A DNA stretch of 63,966 nt, taken from Hyphochytrium catenoides. Taxonomy: Eukaryota > Protista > Hyphochytriomycota. Location of the stretch: the NCBI GenBank assembly GCA_900088475.1, contig FLMG01000725.1:11030-74995 (forward strand), in the 5' to 3' direction. Below the pieces are notes generated by a model that had not been told where the DNA came from, made no database searches, and saw only the letters and a program-made list of their open reading frames with translations. The translations under genes were made by a program, and so were the position numbers. Below, piece by piece: positions 1,754-63,721 of the stretch; positions within the stretch are counted from its first letter, which is position 1; each line of letters opens with the position of its first letter.

Positions 1754-3637
1754 ATGAGTCAAAACGCTCGCAGCCGCCGCTTTGCGGAACATTACTGTCC
1801 ACTTTCATCATCAGGAGGGAGCCTCTTCTTCTCCTCTTCGTCTGGCCGCCGTCTTGTTTCTCCTGGCTCTTTGTGCATCGTGTGGCTTCTCTGTAATGCG
1901 CTGATGGGCAGTTGGATGGTGCGCTTTGCAACGGCCGTGGATGAGGCTGTTCCTTCTTCTTATGGACAACCAAAGTTCTACGCTTTTGCTGCTGCTGATG
2001 GGGGTGCTGTCGTCACCAGTAACATGGACTTCTCGCGGTCCCTTTCAGGGGTCTCGGAGAAGAGAGAAGGAGGAAAGGAGCACCCCAAGCTTGTCCCACA
2101 TTCTATTCATCGGTTGCTTGCAATCGCTTTAGGTCCAAAACCTGCAACACCAGCCGGGAGTTCACATCAGGTGTCTGCTGCAGGAGCCAGGGCTGGGCAG
2201 AATCCTCCATCGGCAGCGGTAGCAGCGGCGAGAGCAGCGCAGCATCCTGTGCATGGTAACCCTTCTCGTTATAAAAGAACAGCGATCGACGGCGAGCTGA
2301 CAGCAGCTGACACCAACCATCCGGGACAGCAGCGTCCACCGCCCCCAAAAGAGCAAGGTTTTGCTCCTGTGGCTCGTCCTGGCGAGGGCCTACCGCCACA
2401 ACAAGCAGCAAGAGGAACAGCGGTTGAACAGAGCGCTCCAGGCATCCCACCAGGTGGCGGCGGACGGTCCGGAAAAGCCCAGCCACGTAACCGGCCGAAT
2501 CCCGCCGGTTCTCTTAGGAAAAGGGTGGAAGACTATATAGAACGTGCACCGTTCAGAAGAGGAGGGATTGTTAAGGGCGAAACCCTGAAGACAGTGGACT
2601 TTGAGCTTCTGCGACGTCTTATGAAGGATTGGAAAGAATATTTTTCAGAAGGAGGCAAACCTATACCGATGAGGAAGGACGGCGATACTACATTCTCGAA
2701 GCAACTTAAAGCTGATTTTCGTGACGTTCTTAGATTAGTCAAAGACGGAGCGGAATTTACAAGAGACAAAATCGTTCGCTTGGTGCGTAATCCAGAGTCT
2801 CGCAGCGGGCCCAACCCTGTCGAAGACTACATCTCATATATGAAGGCCCAGATCCAACAGCTGTCAGACTTCCCACGCACGCAGTCCATGCTCAATCGCA
2901 AGTTCTTTGGTGAAGTTCTACCGCGACTGCTAAAAAGCATTGGCATGAAAGTCAAGGAAGAGGGGGGGATACCGCCCGAAGATCGACCAAATCTCGAGAA
3001 GGTGAAGGCTATGATTGATGAGGCATTCGTAGACACTCCTGCTGCTGGTCGACCAGGAACATCACCAGCAGCACCTCCTCAGGTTAGGGGAGAAGAACAA
3101 GGGCCGGCACGTATGGCCGCTGCACAGCAGCAACCGGCTGCTCAGCGGCAGCAACAGCCGCCAGCCGTAGGAGAGAATAACGCTCCTTCTGTTCCTGAGG
3201 CAGCCAATGGACCCGCCAGGAACCGCCAGGAGGAACAACCATCCCCAGTGAACCCAAGACCACCAGTAGAGGGCGGAGGAAATGGCGACACTACTCGTCC
3301 GTTATTGCCCGTTGATGCTCCCAAACCTCGTCTTCCCGAGGCAGAGATTAGAATTCTCATTCGTGAGAGTGTGTTTCATCTCGCAGGGCGCGGCTTATCA
3401 AAGCCTAGGAGGGTTATTGAAAGAATCTTGTCATCGCTAAACATAGGGCCCCAGGCGAAGCTAGTGGACGCTCTCACAGAGCTTATTAACCCTGAAGCCT
3501 CGCGCGGCGATCGCAAGGAAATCGTAAAGGCTATCAATGCAAAGCTGGACAAAATCTACGCAGAGCGTCAGACAAGAAAAGAACAACTAAATCAAGCAAA
3601 GCGGGCTAGTTCACCGGGTCCGTGGTTGTTGACATAA
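1754..3637 (+). CDS. Orphan 627-aa Pro/Ala/Gln-rich protein with a hydrophobic N-terminal segment, possibly secreted
   Basis: 1.9-kb uninterrupted ORF from ATG. It has a hydrophobic stretch (SLCIVWLLCNALMGSWMV), an RYKR dibasic site, and two charged helical-looking blocks separated by P/Q/A linkers. No family recognised. Confidence 0.75.
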   Translation: MSQNARSRRFAEHYCPLSSSGGSLFFSSSSGRRLVSPGSLCIVWLLCNALMGSWMVRFATAVDEAVPSSYGQPKFYAFAAADGGAVVTSNMDFSRSLSGVSEKREGGKEHPKLVPHSIHRLLAIALGPKPATPAGSSHQVSAAGARAGQNPPSAAVAAARAAQHPVHGNPSRYKRTAIDGELTAADTNHPGQQRPPPPKEQGFAPVARPGEGLPPQQAARGTAVEQSAPGIPPGGGGRSGKAQPRNRPNPAGSLRKRVEDYIERAPFRRGGIVKGETLKTVDFELLRRLMKDWKEYFSEGGKPIPMRKDGDTTFSKQLKADFRDVLRLVKDGAEFTRDKIVRLVRNPESRSGPNPVEDYISYMKAQIQQLSDFPRTQSMLNRKFFGEVLPRLLKSIGMKVKEEGGIPPEDRPNLEKVKAMIDEAFVDTPAAGRPGTSPAAPPQVRGEEQGPARMAAAQQQPAAQRQQQPPAVGENNAPSVPEAANGPARNRQEEQPSPVNPRPPVEGGGNGDTTRPLLPVDAPKPRLPEAEIRILIRESVFHLAGRGLSKPRRVIERILSSLNIGPQAKLVDALTELINPEASRGDRKEIVKAINAKLDKIYAERQTRKEQLNQAKRASSPGPWLLT

Positions 3638-4269
3638 GGATGATTGAAGCAGATAGGAAATGGGAGACATCGATAGGAGAAGGCTCACCATCGAGAGCTC
3701 TTCTCCTTATCGTAGGATTACCTTTTTGTCTCCCGCGCAGTGCAGAGACCTCATGTCCAACTTCACTTACCTCTGTCACGGGTCTACCGCATCGTGTCCT
3801 CTCCCCTCTCCTCCTCTTCCTTTTTTCTCACCATCTGCAGTCTCTTCTCTTCCTCTCGTTCCCTGTCTTGAGTAAGATTTCGTCTGAACTCATCTGTGCT
3901 TTATTTCTTGCTGATAGAGCCACGGCAGTTGCTCTTCTTGCTGTCATGGTCTGTCTTGGTATAGTGCATACATCTCTGCTCAATCTGTCTTGCCTTTATA
4001 TATGAATCTAATTCAATAGTAATGGTTGTGAGAAAAGCTACTAGGAAAAAACAATGGGGAAGAGGAGAAAGAGAGAAACGAAGAAGCCGAACGGGAAGGA
4101 AGTGGACGAGAGCAAAGAAGTTAAGGAAGAATGGAAAAGAGAAAGAAGAGAGAAAGAGGCAGACGATAAACTTATTAGCTGGTGGAAGGACACTCCTCCT
4201 TCCCGGTTTGGCTGCTGGGTGTCGATTTCTCTCTCGGTATTGACCTGCCGCTCTTGCTAATCGCTAACG

Positions 4270-4333
4270 ATTGTCTCTCTCTCTCTCTTTTCTACGACTG
4301 TCCTTTTCCCAAACCCGCTCTTTTTATTCGTGA

Positions 4334-4405
<72 letters not shown>

Positions 4406-4850
4406 GTTTAAGGCACGTCCTCCTCCTCTTTCTTCTACCCCATCCCATCCAACCTCTCTTTCTCTCCTTTCCTCTCTCCGTCTCTTCGTGTCTTTCTCTC
4501 TCTCTCGCCTCCCTCTGTCTCACAGATTGACGCAAACATGCTTAACGAGATCGTGGTTGCTGTGGTGGAGACGATCGCTCTTTTTCTCTGAGGAGAAGAA
4601 GATATCTTTCATATGAACGCTTTTAACCTCGCTTATTGGCCAGCAATGGCAAGTCAACCGTCTTCTCTCTCGTGCGTGCCGTCTTCTTCGCTGTCTCTGT
4701 ATAATGTGTCTCTCTTCCGAATCCCTCTAAGCCATCGATCGCTATCTCATCACTCCTCCTTTCTCTCATTTTTCTCTCCCTGACTCTCTTTTCGAGGTCC
4801 GACCTCCTCTGTATTTTTCTCTCTCTCTGTCTCTCCCTCTCTCTCTGTCT

Positions 4851-4883
<33 letters not shown>

Positions 4884-5050
4884 CTCTCTCTCTTTCTTTC
4901 TCTCTCTCTTTCTCCTCTCTCTTTCTCTCTCTCTTCTCACAGCCCGACGGGTTGATCCTTCTCTTCCCTAATATCTGTCTTCTCTTCTTTTCTCTTCTGC
5001 TATACTCTCTTGTCCCCCTTTCTCTCTGTTGACATTTCTCCCCTCTTCGC
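4270..5050. repeat. (CT)n microsatellite-rich tract
   Basis: Near-perfect CT runs at about 4335-4400 and 4820-4940. Confidence 0.9.
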
Positions 5051-8000
5051 CTCCATATATCTATCCCTTCAGCGTCTCCTTCCTGCGGAGCCTGTCACAG
5101 AATTCCTAGTCTTGTTCCTCCATCAATCATCACAGCGTAGAAAAGGGCATCTCTGCGGGCTATCCCAAGCAATAATCTATTACTTTCTCTTCTATTCTTC
5201 TTCCAGGGCTGTCACTGTCTGCCTGGCATAGTGGCTGGTAGAGCTCGCATGGATTGGAAGGAGGCAAGCTTTTGATAGAGGAGGAGAAGATAAGGCTAAT
5301 CCAATGAGGAGCATGGCAGAGAATGGCTAAGAATCTGGTCGCGCGTGTGGATGTCCTTTCACGCATCCGTCGGTTCTTCTCTATTTACCTATCTTCTGGC
5401 GGCAGAGGAGAAGAGAAATCTCCTGCTTGCTCATCGAAGACGTGAGACTATCAAAATGCTCAAAGATTAGAAAATGATAAATTTGAGGGCGGGAAAGAGG
5501 AAGTGGCGTGAGACAAGGAGCTAGAGTCAGCAAAAAGACAACAAGCGAGATGAGGAGGTAAGGGGATGGCGAGGTGTGACCTGTGACAGAGAAGACGAAG
5601 AGAGAATTTTCTCGTTGCATTTCAAGCTCGGGCGAAGTTTTTGTTGCCTCACCCGTTGTCTTCCTTCTCTCTTTGACCGGAGACAACTGAAGCATGAGCC
5701 GGCGTGGCAGAAGAGTGCCTGAACGTGTCTGGCGGGACAACTGAGCTGAGGAGGCAAGAGACAGGATTTCTTGTCCTCTTAGCTGCGTCAGCAGTTTTTA
5801 CTCGTCCAGCAGTCGTCTGCATCTTATTCTTTCTTCCCTTATCTTCTTCTTCTTCTTGTCCATAAACGTCTCATTTGTCTCTTCTGAGCCCTTTCTCCCT
5901 ACGTCCTTCTCCACTGACTTCGTTGCAGGCCCGGCCCTCTCCTTCTGCCCTCTTCTACCTTCTCCTCGTCTTACACCTCTAGCATCTCTAGGTATTTGAG
6001 CAGCGACAACGCCTCCTCCTGAACAACATTTCCTAGAGAAGGCAACAAGCGCAGAGAATGTTGTTCACGGGTGAAAGAAGTGAACAAGGCGCAGAAGAGA
6101 GGACAAATAGACTAAAGATAGGCAAAAAGGAGGAAGTGGGATAAGTCAAACGATGGCGATGGGTGATTCTTCCTTCTCCATCTTGCTTCCTTCACTCTGC
6201 AGCAAATGTATGAGGAGAAGAGAGGAGATGCTTGTCAGGGAAAAGGCAAAGGCGAGAGAGAGAGAGAGAGAGACCTAGAGATAAACAGAGTGAAGAAGGG
6301 GAAGACAGATAGAGAATGCGCTTCTTAGTGATCTTGTCTAACTGTTGAGAAGAGTGAGGCCCTTAAGCCTGCGATGATAAAGTAGTTGGTGGCGGCGCTG
6401 TTTTGCGTCAATTCCTTCTTCGCTGGCAACAAGGAAGAAGAAAGATGGCTACAGGCACAAAGATGGCTAAGTTGAACAGAGACATTGCAAAGGGACAAGA
6501 TTTATTTCTTGGCCTGACAACTCTCTTCTCTTTTCTCTTTTTCGCTTTGAGTTTACTTATATCTTTCCTTGCCTCTCTGTCGCCGACAGCTAATGAAGAT
6601 GATGCCCTTCTTCCTCACATTCTTGGGGACAGAAGGGAACAGACAATGGCATTTCTATTAGATGAGGTGCGCAGAGGGGAGCGCGAGCTGAAGAGGCAGC
6701 AGGAGAGAAGAAGAAGGAGAAGGGGCACTGCTGTCATCATCGCATCTGTGCTGCAATGACTGTGTCTTGGACTGGGCGCAGATGAAAGAATATGAACGAG
6801 AGAGAGAGCAGAGACGGCAGGCAATCCGTCGGCAAGTGCTACGCCTTCCTTTCTGTCCTTTTCCACCTCCTGCTGGTTTAGACTTCCCTCTGCTGCCTGT
6901 CTCCTTTCTGCCTCTCGTTGTGCTCTAGAGAAGGTGTCAAAGGTGTTGTCAGGGGGAGAGGGAAGAGCATGGCGTCCAGTCAGCCTATCACCAACGGCAA
7001 AGATGTGAGAAGAGAGGCTGCATAGTGACCTGACTCCTAAAGGTACTGGACAGCGTCTTTCGGGGCGAAAGAAGAGAGCTGTTCCTCATCATCCTTCACT
7101 GTTCTTCTTGCTCTAGAATAGTAGTCGGGAAGCAGTGCTTGGTGAGGATCTTCTGTCGCAGAAGCTATATACAACGGCTTACTCCTTTGAGAAAACCGCG
7201 ACAACGTTGTTCATTTTTTACCTTTGTGCTGGGGCAGGGAGTGAGATCAAGGGAGAGAGGTTTGGCTTCAAGCCTGCGGCAAAGTTTGTCTATTAGTCCT
7301 ACTGAATGATAGACAAATTAGAGTGAAGGCGAGCGAGGGGATTGAGCAAGCCCAGACTTCGTAGCTCTTGGCCCTTCTTCTTCTTCTTCTTTCATTAGGT
7401 TTTCTTCTTCTCCTTCTTCTTAGTTACTTCTGAGCAGGAAGAAGCCAAATGAGACGAAATAAGAGGAAGAAAATGAGCAGCAACTACGAGTGTTGGCCCC
7501 TTCACCCTCCGCTCTCCTATCATCATCAACGCCGCGGAAGAAATTTGTCATAGGTCTTTGATGTCTATTATTCAGCGACGAATAGTGCTCTTAGGACTGA
7601 CTGACGCCGCTTAGAAGGTTCAGCTAGAATGTCACTGGAAGCACTAGTTAGTCGTAGGACCTTGCTCGGCTTTGCGCTGCTAGTAGCAGGTAGAAGCGTT
7701 ATTAGTCATGGAGAAAGCAAGCCTTATTCTCACAGCAAGCAGAGGATGGTAGCTACTCCTTTGGCCAAGCGTAGACCGTTCGGGTTTGGATCTTTCTTCA
7801 GAAGCTACGACGGGGGGCATCTTTGAAGTCTTGATCGTAGGATAGAAAGAATAGCTACTGCTTCGACCTGAAGCTTGTCCTTGGTGGCTCTTCTTAATGA
7901 TTTTCTATCTATCTTCTCAGGAGCAAAGAAGTAAGCAGAAGAGTTCTCTAGTCGCCGCACCACTCGATCACTTCATTGTCTTCGTCGTCAAAAGAAGAAT

Positions 8001-8772: not shown

Positions 8773-9772
8773 ATGGAGCTCGACCACCCGGGCACCGCCG
8801 TAAGTAGTGCAGGAGTCTTGTTCTTCTTCTCCTCATCATCCGTCGTAACGCCAGAGAAAGAGCTCGACGACTTTATTATCTCAGCTGCAGCGGCGGCTGC
8901 ACTACCTCTACCTCTAGACTCCAATACCACGTCGACAACAGGAGGAGGTGAAACTTCTTCTTCGTCGTCGTCGTCGTCGTTACCTTCTTCAGCCAAAAGG
9001 AAGGCGAAGAGGCTTACGAGTCACGAGGACTACCGAGCTGATAATAGTAATAGTACCAAACAGCGAAAGAGAGGAGAGGAAGAAGAACCGGAGTCCAAAA
9101 AGGTACTATGGAGCTGGAGACAGCGCATTAACGAGCTGAAGAAAAAGGTAGAAGTGGAAGAGCGTCGGCATGACGCTCTAAAGAAACGGCTGATGGCGCG
9201 CTCAACCCCTTGCGCCAACCTACTATGTGAAGATCTCTATTTGGGTGGAGCACAGAGCATTCGAGGTGTAGGGAAGTTCCGGGAACAATTGCTGCATGGG
9301 CAGGGAGAGCTGCTTCGAAATCGAAGGGTTCAGGAGTTCACCCTCTGTTTCCATTCGGCTTGCACTCTTGTACACGATCCATTGCCAGATAAGTGTGGAG
9401 AGATGCCTCATGAGCTAGTGCGGGACCCTATGGTCCTTCGAGGACAGGACGCGCTAAATGATCTCTGGTAAGTCTAATCTCATTCTTTTCTTTGGTCCTC
9501 TGCTGAGAGGGCTCAAGATGCGTTGCTACGTATGTAGGGCCCGTTATTCCTCAACGTATGAACGCTTTATATGGAAAGACCTTAAAGTTAAGGCGCTTGA
9601 TCTCCGTGGCGACCGGATAGCTACCGTGTCAATCTTTGAGGCGATTCCTCGAGCTGACCAGCCAAACAAAAGCAGCCCAGGAACTGTGCTACGATTCTCC
9701 TGCGTGAAAAACTATATCTTCTCTCTCGAAAACCGCATCTTGTTTGCCACATGCAAGTTCACTGAGCTTTAG
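8773..9772 (+). CDS. bZIP-like coiled-coil plus putative SnoaL/NTF2-like domain protein, paralogue A (2 exons, about 309 aa)
   Basis: Exons 8773-9467 and 9538-9772. Intron 9468-9537 (GTAAGT...GTAG) splits a TG|G Trp codon and joins two ORFs in frame: RGQDALNDLW-ARYSSTYERFIWKDLKVKALDLRGDRI. Zipper RINELKKKVEVEERRHDALKKRL. Confidence 0.8.
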
Positions 9773-10305
9773 TGGTCAAGAAGAGTCGTGACCGCGGCGG
9801 TGATGATCGTTCTAATCTGAAAACCCAAACACTTCTTCTCCGCTGCTGAGCGAAAAAAAGTTAGTTCTAGTCAGTACCTCCTCTTCTGTAAGCTCAAAGT
9901 TCCAAACAATATGACTCGGACGCTTCTGGCGGACTGAGGGGGGCATTGGGACAGTTATTTATTACTCCTGGATGATGGCCAGTCACTAACAACTGGTGTT
10001 CAAGATCTCTAACCCCTGTAAACGGTGATTCTTGGTCTTCCAAACTATTATATAATATTTATATCTCTCGGCACGCCTTGTGCTTTTGAACTCTTCCCTG
10101 TTCTACCTCTGTAGCCTCACGCTCTGAGCTCACAAGCGGGACTTATCGCGGCCCCCAGGACCCTTGATTCGTGCTCACCTTTATAACCTATAATAAGTAT
10201 TGACGCTTATCAGGGTTCGTTAGAATTCAGGGTTGCGCTGCCAGATCGATGGCATCTTATATTTCAGCGATAGACTAGAAAAAGTTCAATAGGGCGTAGA
10301 GCTTC

Positions 10306-11700
10306 TTGGACAGCAGCAGTGCCCATCTCTCAGAATTTTTAGATGCCCCATCACCAACGACGTCTCCGTCTTCCTCATTCATCTCCCCTCGCATCTCCTG
10401 CTTTGTCCATAGAAGGCCATCAAAGAGACGTCTTTCTCATATGAAGATTGCAGGAGATGCAGGAGGGGGGGGGCGGCCGAAAGAAGGAGGAGGTAGGAGA
10501 GGAACAACAGACATCAACCCTGTCATCGCTGCAATAGATGGGGGCCCGGGAGTCCTTCCCAATAAACGCGGAAGAGGGGGAAAACACTCTCATTACACTC
10601 AGAGAAGCAACAAGAGCAATAGCAGCAGGTAAGATAATAGAGTGATGAGGAACATAGGAGGCGGGAAAGAAAGAGACAGGCACGGCAGCTCCGGTGGTAC
10701 GGTTGCGCCAGAGGAAGAGATGAATCATCATCAGAGCGGAAAGCGCTGAAGAAAGTGTCACCGGGATCTATCTGAACCACAATTACCATCGGAGCCTCAT
10801 TTTCATGAAGAGCAAGAGTAGGAGAATCGCTCCAGAACCTGCATCGCTTGCCAACCACCGGTGGAATCTACAAACTATTCATCTCACCGTCCTGTTGTCT
10901 TCAGTAGCAGATATGATGGAAGCGGCTTCCAATTGCTCCTTTTCTACTCTCCCACACGACAGCATCTGGTGGGTAGGTGAATGAGAAGCGTCATATCGCT
11001 TGTACTCCTATCTTTTGGAGCTACTACTACCTTGAAACCAAACACCTAGACTATTCACTTGCCACGACGCTAATAAGAGAGAAACCCTCCAGCAACAGCT
11101 CCAGGAAGCTGACCCAAGGACTGCAATCTAGGTCTACAGAGGCTGAGGCAGTTTATGGAAAACCATCTCGGCAAGACGTTCAGTGGAGGCCCGAGTTCCG
11201 TCTGTAGTCTAAACGGTGCCTTGCCTATAATGGCCGATTTGCCCTTGTTAGGCGCCCGCTCTGTCTTATCTAATGCTTTAAAAAGCAGCCAAAGACCGAA
11301 AGTTCGTCCCCTAACAAATGACGGCTGGGTGGTATGCCACAGTAAACTTTATCATACAACTTTCTTTTTCATTCCCCCTTGATACGGCTACCTACCATCA
11401 CCTCTGACCGTGCGGAATTTTCATCCCACTTCAAACTCCGCATTGTTATAGCAAGCGGTCATCATTCAGAAAGTGAGGTTGTGACCGGATTTTCCCCTGC
11501 CACTCTTAAATGTTTACCGTCGTGGCCGCTGAGCATCTCCAAGCAGCAGAGGAAGGCGTTACACTAGAGGCGTGCCAAGGCTCTGGTTGGAAGTTGGTTA
11601 GGTTCCAAGGAACGGGAATTTATACAGGGATATCCGAAGCAGATTGGCGAAATATTGGGAGAGGACTTCTGCCCATAATTTTGTCAAGCATCGGCAGACA
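10306..11700 (+). pseudogene. Decayed fourth paralogue of the bZIP-SnoaL-like family
   Basis: Fragments in the expected order across frameshifts and stops: KRETLQQQLQEADPR (about 11065-11120; cf. RKQSLERQLKIAEAR), P*QMTAG-TG|gtatgc (same Trp-codon donor), AEFSSHF (11412), GAC CGG ATT = DRI (11483, 1 nt short of the paralogue A spacing), KLVRFQGTGIY (about 11590). The 5' boundary is uncertain. Confidence 0.55.
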
Positions 11701-14382
11701 GGATAAGCGGAAGACTCGCCGCGAGCCGCGCAGTTAGCAAGAGATTGGAGCAATGACGAGCTTTCGGTGGAGGACCAAGAGTCAAACAATCATTATGGAT
11801 AAATAACACATACTGCACCCTTCTCGTCGCAGTCCAGAATGAGGTCAACAATTTACTGCTGACCAGAAAGGTGGGTAGGTGATATGCTCTCCCGACGGAA
11901 ATGTACCGACTAGCAGCGTGTCATTGGCAATAATACCCGCAATGCAACTGCCGCCGTGATTGAGTATCAAAGAAGTCCTCCCCGTGCTCTTGATAGAGTT
12001 AAAGCCAGGATTGAAGTCACAATTGATCAAACACCTGGCGGGTTGTTGCCAGGAAAAAGCAAAATCGAGAAGAACAGCTTTCCAGGGGAAGGTCTGTCAC
12101 AGCGGTTCCCTAGGTATCCTTGTCTCTTCGTGCATGGAAGCTAGTTAGCTGACAAGACAGCTCGCTACTAACCAGTCCTTTGTCTATTATTATAGCCCAC
12201 TGGCGCTCCTTACATTTGATCTAGGAGAGTAACGTTGAGGAGACTGACTTCTTCTTGGCTGTCACCCCCCCACCCCATCATCAGTAAAGGCTCCACCAGA
12301 CAGCTGCATTGGTCACCTAGTGGCTACGTGGTGATGAAAGCCAAAGCTTCCAGGTTGATAGAAGCTGACGGCATGAAATAATATCAGTTCCCAAAAAATG
12401 GCAGACACAGTCGTTTTCCATCGTCTATGAAAGCAGAGCTCTTCGCAATTGTGGGCCGAGCGCTGTGTGTGGCTGGTATTATTCAAGCTTGTTGGGCAGA
12501 GACAACCCTGCGTGAATCCTCTTCACCGTCTAACAAATATGCGCATCACAGCGGGCCAACTTCCCGCCTCACCATTGATTACTTTCTTACCTTTATAACA
12601 TCTATAGAACCCCACTCTCTCGCAACTAGTAGCAAGCTTTTTTTGTCAAGGGGTCAATAATAATGTTCATGTTTCAAAAGGCAGGGGCATCTTCTTGCCA
12701 TAACTCAGACGGCGGACAAACAGTCGGATCGTCCGTCCACGGAGCTCCAAGTCAGGATACCTACCTACTACCTCGAGCCTCTTCTCGATGAAGGAACGCG
12801 ATCGTTCGCTACTATCTGCTTGCTGTTGTCTCCTCCTTGCTGAAAAACACCTGTTCATTGTTGCGTGAGGGCATATCTGCCTCCATCATCAGCGCTGAAG
12901 TATGTCCTAGATCGGTCCGTTTGCAGATTCAGAAGAGGCAGCAACGGCTGATAAAGGCAGCAGTCTGCGCTGTCTTGCTCTGCAGCTGGCTGTCGTCTGT
13001 CACATTCTGGCTGCTGCGGGGCCGTACAAATAGAACTACAAGGGCACATTCCTGACGACCACGCCAGATACAACACTCCTCCCTCCTCCAGCAGCAGGCA
13101 GGAGAGGGTCGTGCTTTGTCGTGCTGTTCTTCTTCATTCCCTTGTAAACTGCTGCTAATAGGAACGCAGAAATTCACCACCTGCGGACTATGCTCACACA
13201 TCAGCGGACGTGAGTCAACGAAGCTGTGAACACTATATTGATTATATGTATGGGGAAGCATGACGGTCACCAAGTTCGCTATCGTTTCTATGAGTAGAGA
13301 GATCCTTCACAATGGAGGAGTTCCTAGGCACTTTTCATCTCTTTGGGTTTGTGGGTTTGGGGGACAGGGAAGAGAGACAAACACATCACCCATCGCCCAC
13401 AAACACTCCTTGCGGCACTACAGTAATAGTCTATTTTTATAGCCTTTTTATAAAGACAATCACCCAATAATAAAACTAGCTTTCCTGCACAACCCAATAC
13501 ATTCATTCATGACCGGGTGGTGCCGAACTCTATAAGGCTTAGAACCTAGGAATCAGCCAAGACGGGGGAAAAAATGATGGTGAGGGTCAAGTCGATGTTT
13601 CTAATAAGGCCTTCTTCGTAAATAAATAGGAGTAGGTTCTAAATAAGACTGAAACATTAGGTCAACGTAAAGGTGCAGCTGTTATTCTTAGGACTTACAA
13701 AGAGCAGGCTCAGTTATTCTAACGATAAACGCAGTAGGAGCTTTTACCTGTAAACTGGTTGTCGCAGAATGGGTGTTGCACTGTTTGTGGCAGGACGTGA
13801 AGGTGGAAGTAAGGCTATGTACAGTAGGCCTTCCTATAATAAGGCTGGCTTTATGAGTTATTTAGTTCTTATTGCCCTGTGATCTTCCCCCGTTTTTTAG
13901 TTCCATCTTTACTCACAAAGGGCAATGTTTCTTTCCTATAGGTAGAGCCTACGAAAGAGCGAGGGTTATTGCAGGAATGAAATCATTGAAATCTTTCAAG
14001 AACATAAACAGAACATGCAACACCCTTCAAAACGCAGACGCCCTGCTTTCAACAGTTTTTTTTATTGCGGAACCCTGCTGCAAGAACTCTGACGAACTGC
14101 TGGAGCTCAGAAGAGAACAAGAGCTTCACAAGCCAATCTTCTTCGTGGTGGATCATCACCCTTCTTCTTCCTTCGTGCAGCGGCCCTGAGATATGCAGCC
14201 CTGTCGCAGTTGGCAAGCTGTCAAGGAAGCAGTCAGACGGAGACGCTAGCTACTCTTGCCGCAGGAGCACTGGATCGCAACTGCTGCATTGGCTTTTTGC
14301 GCAGGAGGATGCCTTCATCATCATCGGGCCGTACCAGTTTCTCTTGATAATATAGCCCTTCAAAATAACCTAGGAAAGAAGG

Positions 14383-15433
14383 ATGATGGACATCTGTCTT
14401 TTGGAGACGGTACAACCACCACCATCATCATCATGCCTCCGGGTACCTCTTACCAGCAGGGATGGCCCTGGTCCTAACAGTCGAAAGTCAGCCAGGATCC
14501 GAATCGACGCTACTGATGTCGACCCCAAGGAGAGAAAAGAGGACGAAGAGAAGAAGAGTACCAGCACTAAAAGCGGAGGAAAGAAACGGCTACGCCGGAA
14601 TAGATCAGCCCGTTACAAGGCTCTTGAAAAGCAAATTCGAGTGGCTGAGGAGTACCAGCGATCCTTACTACGGCGACTAGAACGAAACTCTTGCCCTTCT
14701 TTCGGCGCCGAGCCTCGGCTTGGAATGTCCACGGATATCACCTCAATAAGGAGGTTCCGAGAACAATGCGTAGACACCATGGTGCGTGCAGCAAACATTG
14801 AAGCATTCGATAGTACCTGCCTGCCGATGTTCCATGACACGTGCACGGTGGTCCATGATGTCATGCCTAGCAGGTCGTCTCTGTGTCCTCCATACGATGA
14901 GCAAGCGCTTGGGGCTGGCTTCTCGAAGGGGCCTATGGCGATGAAGCAAGCCTGGTATGATAGCTTCCAACTAGTTATGACGCGTGGCAGTGGTTCCATT
15001 GCCTAACACTTTCTGCTTTCCAGGATGACCTACACCTCCACCTTTCTATGGTTCCAGTTCAATGTTATCAAGTTGGTGAGCTTCGATCCTAGAGGTGACC
15101 GCATGCTGTGTGTTGGCACTCTGCAAGGCCTTACAGCCGGGGGAACGGGGGCAGCCTCTGGCCTTTTGCCCTCCGATGAGGGCTCTGCGCAGCAGGTATT
15201 CAACGGCTTGGAGCTAAGCACGCTCTTCATATGAGAAACAGACGAGAGCTAGCTTCAAGATACTAACAGTCACTTTTTATTCGTGGTCAACAAAGGCCGA
15301 GGAACAGAGTCATGGGAAGCTGATTGAAGTGCGGGAAGCTTTATTATACGTCTTTTCTCCCCAGAATAGGATCACCTTCACTCGGGCGATCTTCAACTAT
15401 GAAGATAAGACTTGCATGGGTCTATTGATGTGA
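14383..15433 (+). CDS. bZIP-like coiled-coil plus putative SnoaL/NTF2-like domain protein, paralogue B (3 exons, about 293 aa)
   Basis: Exons 14383-14954, 15024-15195 and 15296-15433. Intron 14955-15023 (GTATGA..CTAAC..CAG) lies in the Trp codon; intron 15196-15295 is GTATTC..CTAAC..AAG. The product contains GPMAMKQAW-MTYTSTF, FDPRGDRM and YVFSPQNRITF, which matches YIFSLENRILF of paralogue A. Confidence 0.8.
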
Positions 15434-17782
15434 CAGGATAAGCTGTCTCGGCCACCACTAGTGGGAAATGAACAACAAATGGCCTTTCGACGGCTTTCCT
15501 CCTTGAGGACGTTGTAATGAACGGGCGCTCGAAGCTAGGAGCGAAAGTTCAAAGTAGTACCGAGATGATGTGACCCAAGAGAACGACGCAATAGATTTGG
15601 CAGAGTACTATAGTAGATAAGTTCTGCCAAGGTTGGGTTTATCTATCCGGGCAATCAGGAAGTGACTAACCGTAGCTAGTAAATGGACCGCCTACCTTCA
15701 AGTGAGCCTCTGCAATTGTATATAAAGCAACAGTGAGTCTTCCTTAGACTCTGAAAATGTTCTAAGGGTCAATATTCAATACTTGTACATGTCTTTGAAC
15801 TCCTTCATGAAGTCCATGGATAATTTGAAAGGAAGTGACTAATGGATCCTGGTTGCGGTTCATTACTTAGCGCCACCATGAAAATCCGGCCGCTAAGTTC
15901 AGCATACTACTTCCATTATTGACAAGGATGGAGCTAATAGAATTTTTAAGAGATTAGGGGCATGATGGTAGCGATTGCTAATATGCTAACTGTCTGCTAC
16001 TGAAAGTCACTAGGAAACCAGGACTGGATTATAACAGTCTTTGAAGACTAGACGACTATCCTCTCTGAGGAACATCGGTCTATTCTCTGAAAGATAACCT
16101 GGTGAATGATGGTTGAGCAAATAGGGCCAAGGGTCGGTAGACCAAATGGGAACGTCCAACAGGGGGGAAGAGGTATGCAAATAGCATGAAGAATGAAAAG
16201 CCTTAGGACAGCGTAAGATGAAGGTTCAGTGGATGCTATGTATTTGATGGCCCTTCTACAGTCATCAGTTTATATAGAGAGATCCTCAAGAAGCGTGATA
16301 GCATTTTCTTCACCGTCCTTCTCTGTCTGTAGGGCTGTCTGACGGGGAGCGAGCGGCGAGCGTTCCGCTTCGTAGACCACAATAAAGTCTCACATAACTT
16401 CATCTTCCTGTTGTTCGGGTACTCTCCTAAGCGTGAAAATGGCTTCCGGCGACGGCTGTCGGCAGGGCCGTAGATAGTCCTCCATCAAGGCAAAGCAAAC
16501 TAACATCTGTAAACTCAGAAGTGAGGAGACCGAGTGAGATAGAAAAAAGACCCACCAATTATTTGAATGAAGAATGACAATCGCCTTTCTTCTTTGTATC
16601 ATTCAGCTCCACTCAGACCAGGCGGGAAGCCTCCTCTTCCTCTTTTCTGGGTCCGACCCTCATCTCATGCAAGATATAGCATCCAACAAGGGGTTCGAGA
16701 GTGAAGAAGGAAGAAGGTAAACGGGTTGGGCAGAGCTCTAACGGAGGAAGCAGCAGGTCAGCCTTGCTGATATTGCCTAGCATCATTATTTTTAATAACA
16801 ATATTTGGCATGACTGATCTTGCTGGGAAAGGCCAGTCTCAAGAAGCAAACTAAGAATGGCGGATGTGATGAGGGGATCGACCAGTAGTAGGAGGAGATG
16901 CGGCATTCAAATGGCTGCTGATGGTGCCGATGAGAACACAGGCCACGATATCCTAGTGGAAGAGCTTCGTACGTACCGCCACCAGCACCATATAACAACA
17001 TTGCCTTTAGCGTTCATTGTCACAACGGTCTTACCTTGCAGCCCTGCTTGTCGATACTAGTGTCCTGCCTCTTTGTGGTCCGACTTGGTACTATTATCCT
17101 CAGCTTTGAGCTGCCAGCAAGCTGTTGCACACTCTCATGGTTGCCTGATAATAATAAGTGCACCGTTGTTGACCTTGAGCGTCGAACAAAAGAGGCCGTT
17201 TCACCCTTTCCATCTAACGGGTGAAAGCTTCAGGCTGCAACAATTCTTGCAAAGATTCGCAAGATTCCATTCGTTCTTCATATTATCAAACTTGTACGGT
17301 TCCTGAAAGATACAAGTTGCAACTATCACCCTCAGCCTTGGATCCACGCGCCATCACAGAGAAAATGCCCCTTCAGTGCGTCCTCCTCTTCTTCAGCCTC
17401 TTCTTCTGCAGTCCAGGCAGGTCATGGCCTTCATCGATCCATCTGAGGCGTCTCTTCTGATGCAGCAGCAAGAGAAGAAGAATCTGCTGCTTATTACCTT
17501 GTTGTGCCTCAGTCCAGCAGCAGCAGCGGCCGGTCCCCGCTGTCGTCCCTCATCCACATCAGAAAGCAAGGCAGCACCACCACGACGACAGGCGTCGTAT
17601 TGAAGAAAGACCTACCAAGAACACTGGTGGGAGGTAGCGATGGCTCTAACTGATTAGCTCTACAGAGGAGAAGGGGGCGAATGTCATTATTGTCGGGGGG
17701 GGGGAGCGTCTTCCACGAGTATTCTGGAGGCTAATCATTAGCAGCACAACCACTACCAACAGCACAGCTAGTGCTGCCGGAC

Positions 17783-19219
17783 ATGGAGCAGCACGAGGAT
17801 AGCTTACAGCAGCTGTTGGCTGGCGCAGCAGGAGAAGGGAGCTATTTTTCCTCTTCGCCGCCTTCTTCGCCGCTGTCCTCCATAGTACATGCCCTCACCC
17901 AGGAGGAGGTAACCGGAACAGAAGATGCCATTACTTTGCTCACCGGCAGTCCCTCTTGGAGGCGAATAGATACTTCACCCTTCATCGCCAACATATACTT
18001 AGGGATCGCGCCAGCTGAAGTAGCTCAAACATTAGAGACTGGACGAGAAGGGAGAAAGTGGTGGCAAGAGGAACAAATTGAGCGGAGCATAAATGTAAAG
18101 GAAGGAAAAGCTTTAGATTACGATGGTGGTTCCCTGGTGAATACATTGCATTCTGGACACCGCGTAGTTTCTTCTTCTGATATCCCAAGAAGACAAACTC
18201 ACTCCTCCTCCGCGCCTGCCTCACGCATAGAAACATTCAGGTAAGGAGACTGATGACAGACCGTGAGGGAGGTGCGATAAATGTAAGGGTTAGCTAAGGT
18301 TGGCTCTTCGTCCTCCTTTGAAACACATCTCCTCATTAGGGAGCAGAATGCCGCAGCCTGTCGGCGGTATCGGCAAAAGCAACAAGCGAGAAAACAGAGT
18401 CTGGAACGGCAGCTCAAGATAGCAGAGGCGCGACACTATCAGCTAAAGAAACAACTGGAGGAGCAAGCTTTCGGAAGCTCCAGAAGGCTCTTGGCCCCTA
18501 GATCACAGGCTCAAGCTATTTGTAGTCATCGCAGGAAGATCATTATGGAGAGCCTTGCCGTTGCCTATGTTGGCAATGTCAGGTTCGCCAATATACTGCA
18601 TGAAGACTGCCTTCTAATAGAGCCAACGCATGAGGTGGCCGGCTCATCAAGCATTATAAGCCAATGGTTCGTATGCATCCTTGCCGCCTAGCTTCCGCTG
18701 AGAACTAAAAGCTGAAGCGCTCCTCTGCCGCGTTGAATCTTCAGGGAAGAGTCCAAAAGCAAGTTGACGGATCAAAGTTTTCGAGACGTACACCTCTGTG
18801 CCCTAGATCCCAGGGGTGACCGCTTTCGGGTCGATTGGGTGCACGAAGGATATGTAGCCGGTGATCTATGTCTCTCCGACGGCTACTGGCAGAAAGCTCT
18901 TTCCATCAACAATCCAACGGTGATCATGCCATTAGATGGCTCTTCATCGAATGTCTCATCACAAGGCGGATCGCGGCCAATGCCTGGAAAAGCCCACAAT
19001 CAGCATAGTCAAGAAATACCTGCCATAGATAACATCCAAGAGGTGCGATGGGCTGTAGAAGTATCGATAAGGTCATACTATACGTTCGGAACAGACAATC
19101 GTGTGACGGTGCTAGTCCGAGGCACTTCTTGTCATCCCGTCGTCCGCGTTGAGCTTCCCAATGGAAAGCAGCAGCGGCTTGTTATTGAAAATTCAGCTGT
19201 TGCTGCGCTCATAGCCTAG
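17783..19219 (+). CDS. bZIP transcription factor plus putative SnoaL/NTF2-like domain, paralogue C (3 exons, about 419 aa)
   Basis: Exons 17783-18240, 18340-18666 and 18745-19219. Splicing produces a canonical N-x7-R basic region and zipper: FREQNAAACRRYRQKQQARKQSLERQLKIAEARHYQLKKQLE. Intron 18667-18744 lies in the Trp codon. LDPRGDRF and YTFGTDNRV motifs are present. Confidence 0.85.
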
Positions 19220-19749
19220 TGGGTGACGACGTCGGGATCTCAAGCATCGGCAACCGAGGCAATACATTACCTAAGAGAGTGTCCATTGATTTATGCATAC
19301 CTCCTCGTTTGCAATGGGCACACCGCGGCCGCCTCTTGTTGCAGCAGCCTCAACACTGCAGGTCTCTTTCCTCCTAAGCTATCGATTGGTTGCTGCTGTG
19401 ATGACTACCGCGCCTCTACAATGAAGATGTCAGTGCTATTGAGTTAAATTGAGACTATTCTTTGCTCCTCAGTCGCCAGCATCCTACCCGTGATTGACCA
19501 GTCCCACCATCATCAATCGTTAAGGTACCTCTTATCATCAGTAGACGGCGATGACAAGAATGTCATCACTGTCTTCTCTCTATAGCTGCTGGACCTGCCC
19601 TAAGATGACTACTGGACGAAACATAACCATCATCGCACACATTTTCTTCCTTCTCTATCGTATGACATCAGGCATGTGTGTCCAATGCCTTCTGTGGGGT
19701 TGACAGCGGGCAGTTCTGCTATTAATCTTACGTTCCATGTGGGGTGGGG

Positions 19750-20080
19750 GGAAATAAGGCTCTTACCCACAGACTTGAATGATAGAAGAAGACTATGCCT
19801 GTGAACTATGATGTTCTGCTTGGGATGATTAACCGCGTACGGGAGTCTGTGCTTGCAAGGTTATGCTATGAGCAGCTACCAATGCTCTTCTACGCCTTTA
19901 TGAGCTGAAAATGCGTGAGATAGAAGGGCATTTCAAGTGGGAGGGCAGGAAGCCATTATTTGGAGCGAGTGCCGAGCCACGACAGCATGCAAGTGGGCAA
20001 GCGTCAGGGTGCACCAACGCGGCTACCGTGAGTCCCTGTGCGCTTCAAAGCTCTGCAGACTCGCATCTAGTTGAGAAGTG
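19750..20080 (+). pseudogene. Possible fifth, highly decayed and apparently intronless fragment of the same family
   Basis: NKALTHRLE**...DVLLGMINRVRESVL...LPML, then after a frameshift GQEAIIW...KWASVRVHQRGYR. These loosely parallel HDALKKRL, RLGM..IRRFREQ, LPMF, GQDALNDLW and W..LKV...RGDR. Confidence 0.3.
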
Positions 20081-21255: not shown

Positions 21256-23400
21256 ATGGTGGTGGATCCTGCATACACCGTCAAGCTATCACAATCGTTA
21301 GTCGAAGTCCTCCAAGAGAGTACTTTGACCATCGATGATGCGACCAGGAAAAACCTTTTGCTTACATCTGCTGAGATAAGGTCCGCTCTTTCTAAGTCTT
21401 CTACGGAGCTCTCATCAACAACAGATGAAAAGAAATCGGCAGACTCTCCAGGAGGTCAACTCCTGCCACCCGAGGCTGATGCCGGCAGCGTTGGAAGAGC
21501 TAAGCAGAAGCAGCGAAGGCAAAAGATACTCATGATGGTGGCTCAACGTCCGTTTCTCGAGCTCACGCGGGAACAGAGTAGCCTCAGCGTCATGGAATGG
21601 CTGACTGGGAGAAGGTTCTATGAGCGATATTGGAAGTATAAGTCATGGATGAAGATGTTCTCTTTAGCAGGGTTTATAATGATGGTCATTGTAGTCCCCA
21701 TCTACACTGCAGGGTCACTGACTGAACAACAAAGATTGATAATGTTAATCCTTTGTATCCCGGCGACGCTCTTCGGTCTCACGCATGCGGCGGCGCTATC
21801 AATTGGCTGGGTACTTCGCCAGGCACTATTCAAGTTTGAAGCCGTCTATTTACTGGTGGAGACCTTCTTGTTTTTCGTATCGCTGTCAGGACTCTACTGC
21901 TTCACGGTGTCAGCAATATGCTTTGCCGCCATAGGCTTCCTGAGCACGTTGTCAGGAGTTGTTGTCTATGATAGCATTCCCGTGAGCATCAGGCAAAGGC
22001 TGATTGGCTCATTGATAGTCTGGTGCCTTATGTGTTTGCTCGTGATAGCTCTGATTCTGCTTCACGTGTCTGACTCCATGTGTTATCATCGATTGGACTT
22101 CAAATACGGCCTCATCGAGGACGGCGATCCTCGACAGACAAAGCTTGGTATAGGCCTCTTAGGTTTCTGCGCCAACCGCGGCTTCACAATGCTGTCCTTA
22201 ATGGTGCGAACCACCTATTTGGCCTTTATACATCCTAGCGATTGTGTCCTTATCCGGACCCGAATCCGCATCTTAGAATTGCCGGTAGATGATCGCGCTG
22301 TGCTCTCTGAGGCCAAGGATGACTCTGTTTCTGCAGAAAACCAGCAGAGTAGAGTTTCCATGTTATGCGAATCGCTGGCTGCAAACCTTCGGCAGAAGAC
22401 TGTCCTGGATGAACTCAGCAAAAGCTACCTATTGCGAACCAGGGTCATCATTGAGCAACGTCTTTCCTCATCTTCAGCTATGATTCGAGTCAAGAGCAGG
22501 GGTTCAAGCTATAGGATGAATCAGAGAAGTCTCGTCATAATGGGAGTTCGACCGTATGTAGAACTGACCAGACAACAGAGCAGCCTGACAGTCATGGAAT
22601 GGCTCCTTGGGAGACGCTTCTACCGTGGATGGTGGACGCTAATGAGGTTCATTGCGCCACTTACTCTTGCTTCGTTTTTCCTGATCGTCATCTTGGTGCC
22701 AGTCTGCATGATGCTGCCAACTGCGGACATGAAGGTTGGAATCCTTCTTCCCATAGGTTGCCTTCCCGGGCTTTTGCTTGGACACTTGGGATCTGCGTCA
22801 CTAGCCAAGTGGTGCTTGCTCAAAAAAACTCTGAGCACATTTGAAGCGCGTCTTTTCTTGGTAGAAAGTGCGCTATTTGCCATCTCTTTGTCTGTCGTCC
22901 TGGATTTCTCCCCTACAGGTTATGCCACCTCATCGATCATATTTGGGTTACTTTGCGGCGTCCCATACTACGACAGCAGTCCTACGCGAGTTCGGCGGCG
23001 AGTGAGAAGCATCCTTGGTTCCTATTGCGTGAGCTTCACTTTGATCCTCATAATCATACATTTCCGGCTCTCCCCAAACATTCGTGCTTACCGCTGGGAT
23101 CCTATGCGTGGGTTCATGGTTCAGGCAAGCCTACAGCCACACAACAGGAACGACAAGACAGCTCTGAGCCTCTCGGTCATTGACTTCTGTCTCAATAGAG
23201 GCATCACCGCATTAACTCTGGTAGCGCGCGCGACGTACCTTGCGTTCCGATATCCAGCTGATTGCGTCTTCCTAACTAACCGACTTCGGATCGTGGAGGA
23301 GACATCTGCATCCCGCCATCAGTCTTTGAAATCCTGGTGGTCTACTAGTACCTCAAAAGACGCAAGGGCTAAGAACAGTAAAGAGATTATGGACCCTTAG
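21256..23400 (+). CDS. Multi-pass membrane protein made of two tandem homologous halves of about 6 TM each (714 aa)
   Basis: Intronless ORF with an obvious internal duplication: RPFLELTREQSSLSVMEWLTGRRFY vs RPYVELTRQQSSLTVMEWLLGRRFY, and FCANRGFTMLSLMVRTTYLAFIHPSDCVLI vs FCLNRGITALTLVARATYLAFRYPADCVFL. Confidence 0.85.
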   Translation: MVVDPAYTVKLSQSLVEVLQESTLTIDDATRKNLLLTSAEIRSALSKSSTELSSTTDEKKSADSPGGQLLPPEADAGSVGRAKQKQRRQKILMMVAQRPFLELTREQSSLSVMEWLTGRRFYERYWKYKSWMKMFSLAGFIMMVIVVPIYTAGSLTEQQRLIMLILCIPATLFGLTHAAALSIGWVLRQALFKFEAVYLLVETFLFFVSLSGLYCFTVSAICFAAIGFLSTLSGVVVYDSIPVSIRQRLIGSLIVWCLMCLLVIALILLHVSDSMCYHRLDFKYGLIEDGDPRQTKLGIGLLGFCANRGFTMLSLMVRTTYLAFIHPSDCVLIRTRIRILELPVDDRAVLSEAKDDSVSAENQQSRVSMLCESLAANLRQKTVLDELSKSYLLRTRVIIEQRLSSSSAMIRVKSRGSSYRMNQRSLVIMGVRPYVELTRQQSSLTVMEWLLGRRFYRGWWTLMRFIAPLTLASFFLIVILVPVCMMLPTADMKVGILLPIGCLPGLLLGHLGSASLAKWCLLKKTLSTFEARLFLVESALFAISLSVVLDFSPTGYATSSIIFGLLCGVPYYDSSPTRVRRRVRSILGSYCVSFTLILIIIHFRLSPNIRAYRWDPMRGFMVQASLQPHNRNDKTALSLSVIDFCLNRGITALTLVARATYLAFRYPADCVFLTNRLRIVEETSASRHQSLKSWWSTSTSKDARAKNSKEIMDP

Positions 23401-24906: not shown

Positions 24907-25632
24907 CTACTCTGCGTACTTATATGAGCCCTCTTTCTCCAGCGCTCTTTGGTATGCAGGTCGGTTTTGGATCTCTTGCACGAACTTGTGCAGGCACGGC
25001 CATCGCCCTGGATTCTCTTTGAGGCCAGCTCTTTCCATGGAGACTTCAATAGGAAAGCTCATCTGGATATCTGCAGCTGTGAAGTCTTCGCCACAGAACC
25101 ACCTGGTCTCCGCTAGCTCTGCCTCCATAAAGTCGAGATTCCTTTCCAGATTGGGGTTGATGAGAAGTTCAGACACCCGATGGGTTATCATTGAGGCAAC
25201 GGGACGGAATATAAACGGCATCTTGGCGCTTTGAATCTTGGTGATAACCAGCTTCAGAAGCAACGGAGGCATTGCAGATCCCTCAGCAAAGTGCAGCCAA
25301 TAGGTGAAGCGTAGTCTTTCGGCAGTCCCTGGCCGCGGGTGAGTAAGGCTTTCTGTGGTACTACCTTCTGCCCCTTCATTGGCGGCGTTATAGTACTTGT
25401 CTAGTAGATATTCAATGATGGCACCGGATTCCGCGATGGTCAGGTTTCCATCTACGATCACTGGAGACTTTCCCAGAGGATGAATTTGTCTCAGAGCTTC
25501 CGGGGCCAGCATCGTTGCTGGGTCCCTTTCATAGATGATAAGTTCATAAGGTAGCCCAAGCTCTTCGAGAAGCCAGATAACTCGATGGGAGCGTGAGTCG
25601 CGAAGGTGATGCAGGGTAAGTGTCGCTGTCAT
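24907..25632 (-). CDS. Glutathione S-transferase, GTT1-like/bacterial type
   Basis: Motifs LHHLRDSRSHRVIWLLEEL, HPLGKSPVI, AESGAIIEYL, YWLHFAEGSAMPPL, FTAADIQMSFP and RPAYQRALE. Intronless. Confidence 0.95.
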   Translation of the reverse strand: MTATLTLHHLRDSRSHRVIWLLEELGLPYELIIYERDPATMLAPEALRQIHPLGKSPVIVDGNLTIAESGAIIEYLLDKYYNAANEGAEGSTTESLTHPRPGTAERLRFTYWLHFAEGSAMPPLLLKLVITKIQSAKMPFIFRPVASMITHRVSELLINPNLERNLDFMEAELAETRWFCGEDFTAADIQMSFPIEVSMERAGLKENPGRWPCLHKFVQEIQNRPAYQRALEKEGSYKYAE

Positions 25633-31949: not shown

Positions 31950-32009
31950 TGTGTCTGGCCCTCTGTCTGTCTCTCTCTGTCTGTCTGTCTGTCTCTCTCT
32001 GCCTGTCTC

Positions 32010-32049
<40 letters not shown>

Positions 32050-63027: not shown

Positions 63028-63721
63028 CTCTCGATGCGCGATCACCACAAGGAGGGTGACACGAAGAAGGACAGTAGAGTCCTAACACTTCTCTTTCTGT
63101 TTTGCTGGGTAGTAGTGTGGCCCGTTCCGGGTACTGTGGCAGCTGACAGTTGATAAGCTCTTCTTGTGATGATGGCTGAGGCTTGAAAGGGACAAGTTTT
63201 GATTGTGGTGGCGCTTCTTCTCCGTCGCTGTTGAACTGAGTACGATGTGGGTCAGAGATAATCTTTCCCCACTCCGTAGCCTCCTCCACTCTTTCTGGCT
63301 CTAATTATCTGGACGTGTCGAAGTAAACTATGGGTCATGGTGTTGCCGTCTTCACAACCTCTGCCGAAAGCGGGAGAGCACTTGACATGGCATGTCATTC
63401 AAGGAATAGCGATGGGCAAGAGAACCAAGGGGGCGGACAAAAGGGGAAGAAGAAGGGGAAGGTAGGGCTTTTGGTGTCCAGATCCAAATCAAAGAGAACC
63501 AAAGGACAAGGTCCGGCGTGCAAGACGTTTGATAGATATTTCCGCATAATAACAAAAAGAGCTCCTGCTGCTGCGTGGTGGTGTAGAAGATACGGGCGGG
63601 TGTTAACAGTGCTGCTTACACAGGAGAAGCCAAAGTCGTCGTCTCCTAGATCAGGAGAAAGAGCAGCCTTCTCTGGTTGACGTGGCCCCAGAGACGAGAC
63701 AGGCTGAGCGGAAAAGATACA

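Follow-up and report, generated by a model that had tools for sequence, protein, structure and literature searches.

Three genes with a common architecture

The window analysed here is the whole 63,966-nucleotide (nt) stretch of contig FLMG01000725.1 (Hyphochytrium catenoides, assembly GCA_900088475.1), positions 11,030 to 74,995. Toward its beginning lie three genes on the plus strand, designated g1, g2 and g3, whose products join a short zipper helix, related by sequence to the basic leucine zipper (bZIP), to a C-terminal domain with a very probable NTF2-like fold. The gene models were built from genomic sequence, with splice junctions inferred from comparative evidence; coordinates of exons, introns and motifs are collected in Table 1. 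The original prediction, made for the interval 8773-20080, had joined fragmentary open reading frames (ORFs) into three same-strand genes of one architecture, and once spliced, 3/3 are open through to a stop codon. In each product, a low-complexity N-terminus leads into a short zipper helix, and a flexible linker joins this helix to a C-terminal domain of about 150-180 residues. The end of that interval, 19220-20080, contains nothing related to the family.

All introns of g1-g3 begin with GT and end with AG, and they range in length from 69 to 100 nt. One intron is common to the three genes. Its predicted start positions (9468, 14955 and 18667) proved exact, and in 3/3 genes the same Trp codon is split as TG/gt...ag/G, where the slashes mark the junctions. 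In the second intron of g2, a motif resembling a branch site, ACTAAC, stands 40 nt before the acceptor, while the other introns have looser CTRAY-like branch sites; a branch site of the ACTAAC type may help in placing the host lineage. The least certain part of the models is g3 exon 1, because its start codon and the intron that follows were placed from reading frame and GT..AG only. The motifs predicted for the family largely hold: the zipper pattern L-x3-[VIL]-x2-[AE]E-x2-[HQ]-x2-L-x3-L, [FL]HxxC, D[PL]RGDR and YxFxxxNR[IV] are present as described, but the proposed 'G..A...W' is actually G-x7-W, and g3 is without the Ala.

Relatives elsewhere and a shared intron

Among 1.84 billion cluster representatives, a profile covering the zipper and the N-terminal half (N-half) of the domain picked out P0001 and P0002 (E ~2e-4) as the only credible proteins. 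A third match, P0003 (3641 residues, with an IS1595 Zn-ribbon), was rejected as spurious; its similarity comes from short stretches that recur. In 5.8 billion proteins, word-indexed searches with g2 exon 1 and with profiles for the N-half and the C-terminal half (C-half) of the domain, returned only P0001, P0002 and P0004; this last one is the ORF of exon 2 at the P0002 locus. JGI metagenome contigs, scanned twice, yielded no relatives. The view that the family is lineage-specific, put forward earlier, agrees with this scarcity.

The loci for P0001 and P0002 (contigs L001 and L002) come from Logan assemblies of runs SRR28521185 and SRR32051698. Both proteins terminate exactly at the conserved Trp, because an intron donor is found there in the DNA of each contig. 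In L001 the donor reads AAGTG/GTGAGT, and the contig stops before exon 2. In L002 it reads TGGTG/GTAAGG and is followed by a 68-nt intron and then by an exon encoding ALDARGDR ... IFSSDNRV. Judged from genomic sequence at 5/5 loci, the intron in the Trp codon is a character of the family, and it is the best available stand-in for RNA evidence.

These loci bear on the suspicion that g1-g3 are an artefact, either decaying pseudogenes or chance ORFs stitched together. An exact look-up of the ten longest ORFs of the window in a collection of 15 billion proteins found 0/10, which would suit such an origin; since none is present, the genome of the window is apparently not represented in that collection. 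Against an artefact, all three copies and L002 regain frame over a GT..AG intron at the same codon and keep the downstream motifs, L001 has a donor at the same position, every model reads through to a stop codon, and the similarity among them is significant. We regard an artefact as very improbable.

Contig L002, 6.7 kb in length, carries three other called genes (1506-2258, 3930-4421 and 4648-6036, encoding 163-462 residues), none of them similar to the window or with a significant Pfam match (a faint one to zf-RING_15 has E 0.07). The GC content of the contig, 53% vs 49% in the window, places it in a different organism. L001 contains TC/CT-rich runs, and the window contains (TC)n microsatellites; these common runs suggest that the window and L001 have related hosts.

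Three old tandem paralogues

When the spliced proteins were searched against the window by tblastn, g1 and g2 matched with E 1.6e-13 and g2 and g3 with E 7.8e-4, and nothing else scored below 0.002. With the zipper excluded, all six pairwise local alignment scores among the spliced C-terminal domains of g1, g2, g3 and L002 exceeded every one of 500 shuffles (z 4.8-26.5). Together with the common Trp-codon intron, these scores uphold the proposal of local duplication. The closest relatives of each other are g1 and g2 (z 26.5). The g3 domain is nearer to that of L002 (z 15.3) than to those of g1 and g2 (z ~5), a pattern that suggests, on these sequence comparisons, at least two subfamilies older than the split of the two host organisms.

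Identity among the paralogues is only about 20-30%, and little is conserved outside structural positions. No nucleotide-level repeat was found between the three copies, and the duplication is therefore old. A tblastn search of the window found no fourth copy or pseudogene, and neither a further copy nor an ORF with a Pfam match lies in the intergenic spacers of 4.6 and 2.35 kb. In the spacer downstream of g1, positions 10081-10100 form a 20-nt inverted match, 95% complementary, with 18742-18761, which covers the acceptor and first codons of g3 exon 3; by a rough back-of-envelope estimate, about 0.01 such matches would be expected by chance. Translation of 10081-10100 on the minus strand shows no likeness to the family beyond this 20-nt match.

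Zipper and basic region

In an AlphaFold2 model of a g2 piece, the basic stretch and the zipper form one continuous helix (residues 3-31) with a predicted local distance difference test (pLDDT) score of 86-94, and the roughly 15 residues that come next form a disordered linker. The corresponding region of g3 has an Asn/Arg segment, N-AAACRRY-R, followed by exactly nine residues before the first zipper Leu, which stands at +18 from the Asn. This is the canonical N-x7-R-x9-L spacing. The d positions of the g3 zipper are L, A and L, and the a positions are L, H and L. Within this region, g3 E-Q-N-x2-A-x-R-Y-R-Q-K-x2-A is in register with the ATF-4 chain 1ci6_A, so that the basic region can be called ATF4-type; the match is weak (E 0.25, 15 bits), and unlike ATF4, g3 has a basic region whose N-terminal part is not basic, a shorter zipper and no other similarity.

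Pfam was scanned with exon pieces, at E limits of 1-10 for the g1-g3 and L002 exon-2 pieces and 0.1 for P0001 and P0002. The g3 exon 2 piece is in register with positions 11-51 of bZIP_1/bZIP_2 and scores 13.2 bits (E ~0.1), under the gathering cut-offs of 27.6 (bZIP_1) and 22.3 (bZIP_2); the Pfam bZIP entries are PF00170 and PF07716. The g1 and g2 exon pieces have no Pfam bZIP match. In g2 the basic stretch has Lys at the position of the invariant Asn, with an Asn ten residues later, and the corresponding place in g1 is neutral to acidic. Stretches rich in Arg and Lys stand directly N-terminal to the zipper in g2, P0001 and P0002, with no Asn at the canonical distance.

The label bZIP, as first applied to all three proteins, is supported in part: g3 has the canonical spacing and the ATF-4 register, with a Pfam score under the cut-offs, g2 lacks the Asn, and g1 lacks a basic region. 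We classify the family as bZIP-derived on sequence grounds. By prediction, g3 looks still able to bind DNA canonically, the basic region of g2 is a derived one, and g1 alone would probably be unable to bind DNA.

A different account would take these proteins out of transcription altogether, as coiled-coil-tethered NTF2-like enzymes or binding proteins outside the nucleus, the bZIP-like motif of g3 being a coincidence. The subthreshold Pfam score of g3 and the missing matches in g1 and g2 are consistent with it, as is a profile search of the Protein Data Bank (PDB) in which the family ranked generic coiled coils first. Coincidence is a poor explanation for an exact N-x7-R-x9-L that puts the DNA-contact pattern of ATF-4 in register, and for the Arg/Lys-rich residues directly before the zipper in g2, P0001 and P0002. 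We consider this account quite improbable.

Fold of the C-terminal domain

The C-half, modelled by AlphaFold from g1 exon 2 (77 residues; mean pLDDT 79), forms four long antiparallel strands (E7-20, E26-37, E51-61 and E67-76). A Foldseek search against the PDB gave 50 listed matches, essentially all of them NTF2-like cones, including SnoaL2, AclR, PhzA/B, putative polyketide cyclases, ketosteroid isomerase-like proteins, LinA and limonene epoxide hydrolase (prob ~1.0, TMq 0.53-0.63, E 8e-3 to 9e-2). The E-values are modest because the query is just half a domain. The N-half, modelled from g2, continues after the linker with a helix, a short helix, a short strand, a loop and a helix that finishes at the Trp (H48-68, H71-74, E84-88 and H112-118). 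About 30 of its 35 listed Foldseek matches are NTF2-like, with a ketosteroid isomerase first (66 columns at 1.8 A). Since the two halves, modelled independently, point to the N- and C-terminal portions of one superfamily, the assignment is well supported, and the C-terminal domain is, as modelled, very probably an NTF2-like alpha+beta cone of the SnoaL/ketosteroid isomerase type. An NTF2/SnoaL-like fold had been anticipated from motifs; the half models now return NTF2-like proteins almost exclusively, the N-half matches falling short of significance.

In the C-half model, D-x-RGDR and F-x3-NR-[IV] are located at the two beta-hairpin turns, a position that suggests a structural role and not one in lining a pocket. 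Between these two motifs, a stretch with a low-complexity insert ranges in length from 31 residues (g1) to 84-95 (g3 and L002). In the helical half, conservation extends to a Cys (5/5 sequences), an Arg (5/5) and a His (4/5). Weak Pfam matches to DUF7603, DUF5771, IMUP and Asd-4 were set aside as driven by low complexity or coiled coil.

The matches raise the possibility that the cone is a receptor pocket. A small molecule as its input, with a protein contact as the alternative, is a tentative suggestion of fairly low probability. Strict ligand gating, in which the proteins would be one-component bZIP regulators whose DNA binding is switched on or off by a metabolite in the cone, probably a hydrophobic or aromatic one, is rather unlikely. 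Unlikely, too, is the broader idea of a eukaryotic class of small-molecule-gated one-component factors, in which the NTF2/SnoaL cone would be the receptor pocket on a bZIP, g3 the DNA-binding sensor, and g2 and g1 diverged heterodimer partners that tune or oppose it. The top structural matches do belong to the small-molecule-binding branch (SnoaL2 with polyketides, PhzA/B with ligands, ketosteroid isomerase with steroids) rather than to transport-type NTF2, and the conserved Cys, Arg and His of the helical half could line a pocket. Xenobiotic-type enzymes encoded 5.7 to 34 kb downstream of g3 (a GST, an Abhydrolase_3 protein and a Peroxidase_2 fragment) are circumstantial in this regard. On the other side, the most strongly conserved blocks are the hairpin turns, the PDB itself is biased to enzyme-type cones, paralogues only some 20-30% identical keep little outside structural positions, the genomic context points to no ligand, and the cone is known from half-domain models only.

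The cone could also serve as a constitutive module for dimerisation or partner docking, comparable to NTF2, G3BP or the CaMKII hub, that reinforces a weak zipper or recruits proteins and receives no signal. NTF2-like domains are typically obligate dimers or oligomers, the zipper of about three heptads is short, and a short linker before the cone would hold two cones together. However, no transport-type or hub-type NTF2 domain is among the top C-half matches, and we think this role, like the receptor class, has a low probability.

Comparison with known systems

The literature we searched contains no description of a bZIP fused to an NTF2/SnoaL-like domain. Modular bZIP proteins with a C-terminal regulatory domain are known; an NTF2-like cone in that place is rare and apparently undescribed, and g1-g3 belong to no named family beyond 'bZIP-derived' and 'NTF2-like fold'. 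The C-terminal region of oomycete bZIPs, earlier named as comparable, would be a putative parallel.

In the aureochromes and other bZIP-PAS proteins of stramenopiles, the C-terminal domain controls dimerisation. The order of parts is the same as in g1-g3: bZIP, short linker, compact alpha+beta C-terminal domain of a sensor type. A PAS-like fold for the domain of g1-g3 was nevertheless rejected. Unlike a PAS domain, the tail of g1-g3 as modelled consists of three helices and then four consecutive long strands, its Foldseek matches are NTF2-like, and it has no PAS/LOV Pfam match and no flavin-binding motif. Aureochromes are discussed in PMC13737086. The nearest described architecture of a bZIP with a C-terminal domain of unknown character is the fungal bZIP-DUF3425 (PF11905), uncharacterised in its C-terminal domain and present as multi-copy families in some genomes (PMC9223689, PMC13113314). 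DUF3425 was likewise rejected for the present family: no exon piece of g1-g3, P0001, P0002 or L002 matches PF11905, the distinction here being one of Pfam match alone.

The closest precedent for how the cone may work is bacterial. In sigma-J of M. tuberculosis, a fused SnoaL_2 domain modulates promoter recognition (PMC5766207), and in the ECF41 and ECF56 sigma factors a C-terminal SnoaL_2 acts on promoter recognition in cis (PMC5766207, PMC7730460). These are sigma-70-family proteins, not eukaryotic zippers; they have no sequence relationship to g1-g3, and the fusion arose independently. The fold class of SnoaL, ketosteroid isomerase and PhzA/B fits both halves of the domain, and the hairpin motifs of g1-g3 presumably resemble those typical of these families. 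Proteins of those families stand alone, as enzymes or binding proteins with about 120-150 residues, whereas the cone of g1-g3 is fused to a zipper, has a variable stretch of 31-95 residues between its hairpin motifs and shows no detectable membership in their sequence profiles.

A proposed regulatory cone on a zipper protein

The explanation we favour, with a probability of about 0.5 taken as a whole, is that g1-g3 are old tandem paralogues, three members of a small eukaryotic gene family that evolves fast and encodes zipper proteins with an on-board NTF2-like regulatory cone. It builds on what the sequences and models show: gene structures, paralogy, a shared intron of ancient origin, a helix, and a fold class for each half of the cone. 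Each protein would have four parts: a disordered, Ser-rich N-terminus; a bZIP-type basic region and a zipper of about three heptads, as one long helix; a flexible linker of about 15-20 residues; and the cone. The proteins would dimerise through the zipper. In this scheme g3 would bind DNA as a bZIP through its ATF4-like basic region, g2 would do so through its derived one, and g1, with no basic region, would act as a partner that does not bind DNA. Two cones would be brought together just past the zipper, and we propose that they form a regulatory module because NTF2-like domains normally pair and the zipper is weak. DNA binding would then depend on the cone: whether it is occupied, paired or docked on a partner would determine how stable the weak zipper dimer is and what geometry it adopts. 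The logic would be the same as in aureochromes (bZIP with C-terminal LOV) and in sigma-J-type sigma factors with fused SnoaL_2. The putative function of the family is possibly signal sensing.

Several points weigh against this explanation. The splice junctions are predictions from comparison across loci. The zipper is short, at about three heptads with Ala in one d position; no bZIP family reaches the Pfam threshold on any exon piece; and only one of three paralogues, g3, has the canonical DNA-binding signature. The domain was modelled as two separate halves, each from a five-row alignment, and the packed cone was not seen. Of these, the N-half has a pLDDT of only about 60 and Foldseek E-values of at least 1.8, individually insignificant. 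No Pfam family of the NTF2 clan was found on any exon piece, even at the raised E limits, and PDB sequence-profile searches with the family alignments returned coiled coils or noise but no NTF2-like chain. In the scheme above, nuclear localisation, dimerisation, DNA binding and signal input are all predicted.

Genomic context

Other than g1-g3, the window holds scattered long ORFs, mostly without Pfam domains, and scans for tRNA genes and Rfam families found no matches. It is eukaryotic, with a GC content of about 49% and short GT..AG introns. Those ORFs with Pfam domains include a glutathione S-transferase (GST), a hydrolase and a peroxidase, which are of detoxification type and lie 5.7 to 34 kb downstream of the g1-g3 cluster. 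In the ORF with a Laminin_G_3 domain, a tandem repeat (12/24/36 nt, in frame) occupies 58246-58469, near the N-terminus, where the 12-nt unit recurs about 18 times. The first 6 kb of the window have a strong C/T excess on the plus strand (GC skew -0.33 and AT skew -0.36 in 1-2000).

Table 1. Coordinates of the g1-g3 cluster and of other features in the window.
Feature	Position	Strand	Description
g1	8773-9467 + 9538-9772	+	309 aa
g1 exon 1	8773..9467	+	Ser-rich N-terminus, zipper, domain N-half; last bases are TG of the split Trp codon
g1 zipper helix	9097-9195	+	without basic region
g1 FHSACTLV	9349-9372	+	domain N-half
g1 intron	9468..9537	+	70 nt, GTAAGT..TAG, within conserved Trp codon
g1 exon 2	9538..9772	+	predicted NTF2-like beta-sheet half; stop codon
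g1 LDLRGDR	9596-9616	+	
g1 YIFSLENRI	9713-9739	+	
g2	14383-14954 + 15024-15195 + 15296-15433	+	293 aa
g2 exon 1	14383..14954	+	N-terminus, basic stretch and zipper, linker, helical domain half
g2 basic stretch and zipper	14578-14685	+	
g2 FHDTCTVV	14830-14853	+	
g2 intron 1	14955..15023	+	69 nt, GTATGA..CAG, within conserved Trp codon
g2 exon 2	15024..15195	+	first beta-hairpin with FDPRGDR (15082-15102); variable loop begins
g2 intron 2	15196..15295	+	100 nt, GTATTC..AAG; in variable loop, private to g2
g2 exon 3	15296..15433	+	final strands with YVFSPQNRI (15347-15373); stop codon
g3	17783-18240 + 18340-18666 + 18745-19219	+	419 aa
g3 exon 1	17783..18240	+	long low-complexity N-terminal region
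g3 intron 1	18241..18339	+	99 nt, GTAAGG..TAG, directly upstream of basic region
g3 exon 2	18340..18666	+	canonical bZIP basic region and short zipper (to 18463), helical domain half
g3 LHEDCLLI	18596-18619	+	
g3 intron 2	18667..18744	+	78 nt, GTTCGT..CAG, within conserved Trp codon
g3 exon 3	18745..19219	+	beta-sheet half, 84-residue low-complexity loop, C-terminal tail; stop codon
g3 LDPRGDR	18803-18823	+	
g3 YTFGTDNRV	19079-19105	+	
Glutathione S-transferase	24907-25632	-	Pfam
Abhydrolase_3/Say1-like hydrolase	29000-30415	+	Pfam
Family-2 (heme-thiolate) peroxidase	53024-53548	-	C-terminal half; upstream exon not located
Laminin_G_3 ORF	55161-58568	-	1135 aa, intronless; C-terminal Laminin_G_3 (concanavalin-like) domain
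RNase T2	62125-63048	-	
Four ORFs	1754-3637, 21256-23400, 32635-34401, 37282-39480	+	588-732 aa, no Pfam match
Microsatellites	817-982, 4334-4402, 4818-4938, 31948-32048		long (TC)n and TCTG-type

Implications

Proteins in which a bZIP carries an attached sensor, such as the aureochromes, are valued in two ways, as protist cases of direct coupling from signal to transcription and as parts for optogenetics or chemogenetics. A bZIP with an NTF2-like cone, if the explanation favoured here is true, would add a new sensor or regulatory module to a short list, and the fusion of zipper and cone would be a eukaryotic parallel to the bacterial sigma factors with fused SnoaL_2. If the cone binds a metabolite, ligand-controlled dimerisation could be studied in a compact set of three diverged paralogues, and a small-molecule-gated class, if real, would differ in its receptor principle from nuclear receptors, PAS/LOV-bZIPs and Zn-cluster factors. 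The family also illustrates how genes split into exons, in eukaryotes that have been little sampled, escape protein collections built from ORFs: the only detectable relatives of g1-g3 are exon-sized fragments in assemblies of raw reads.

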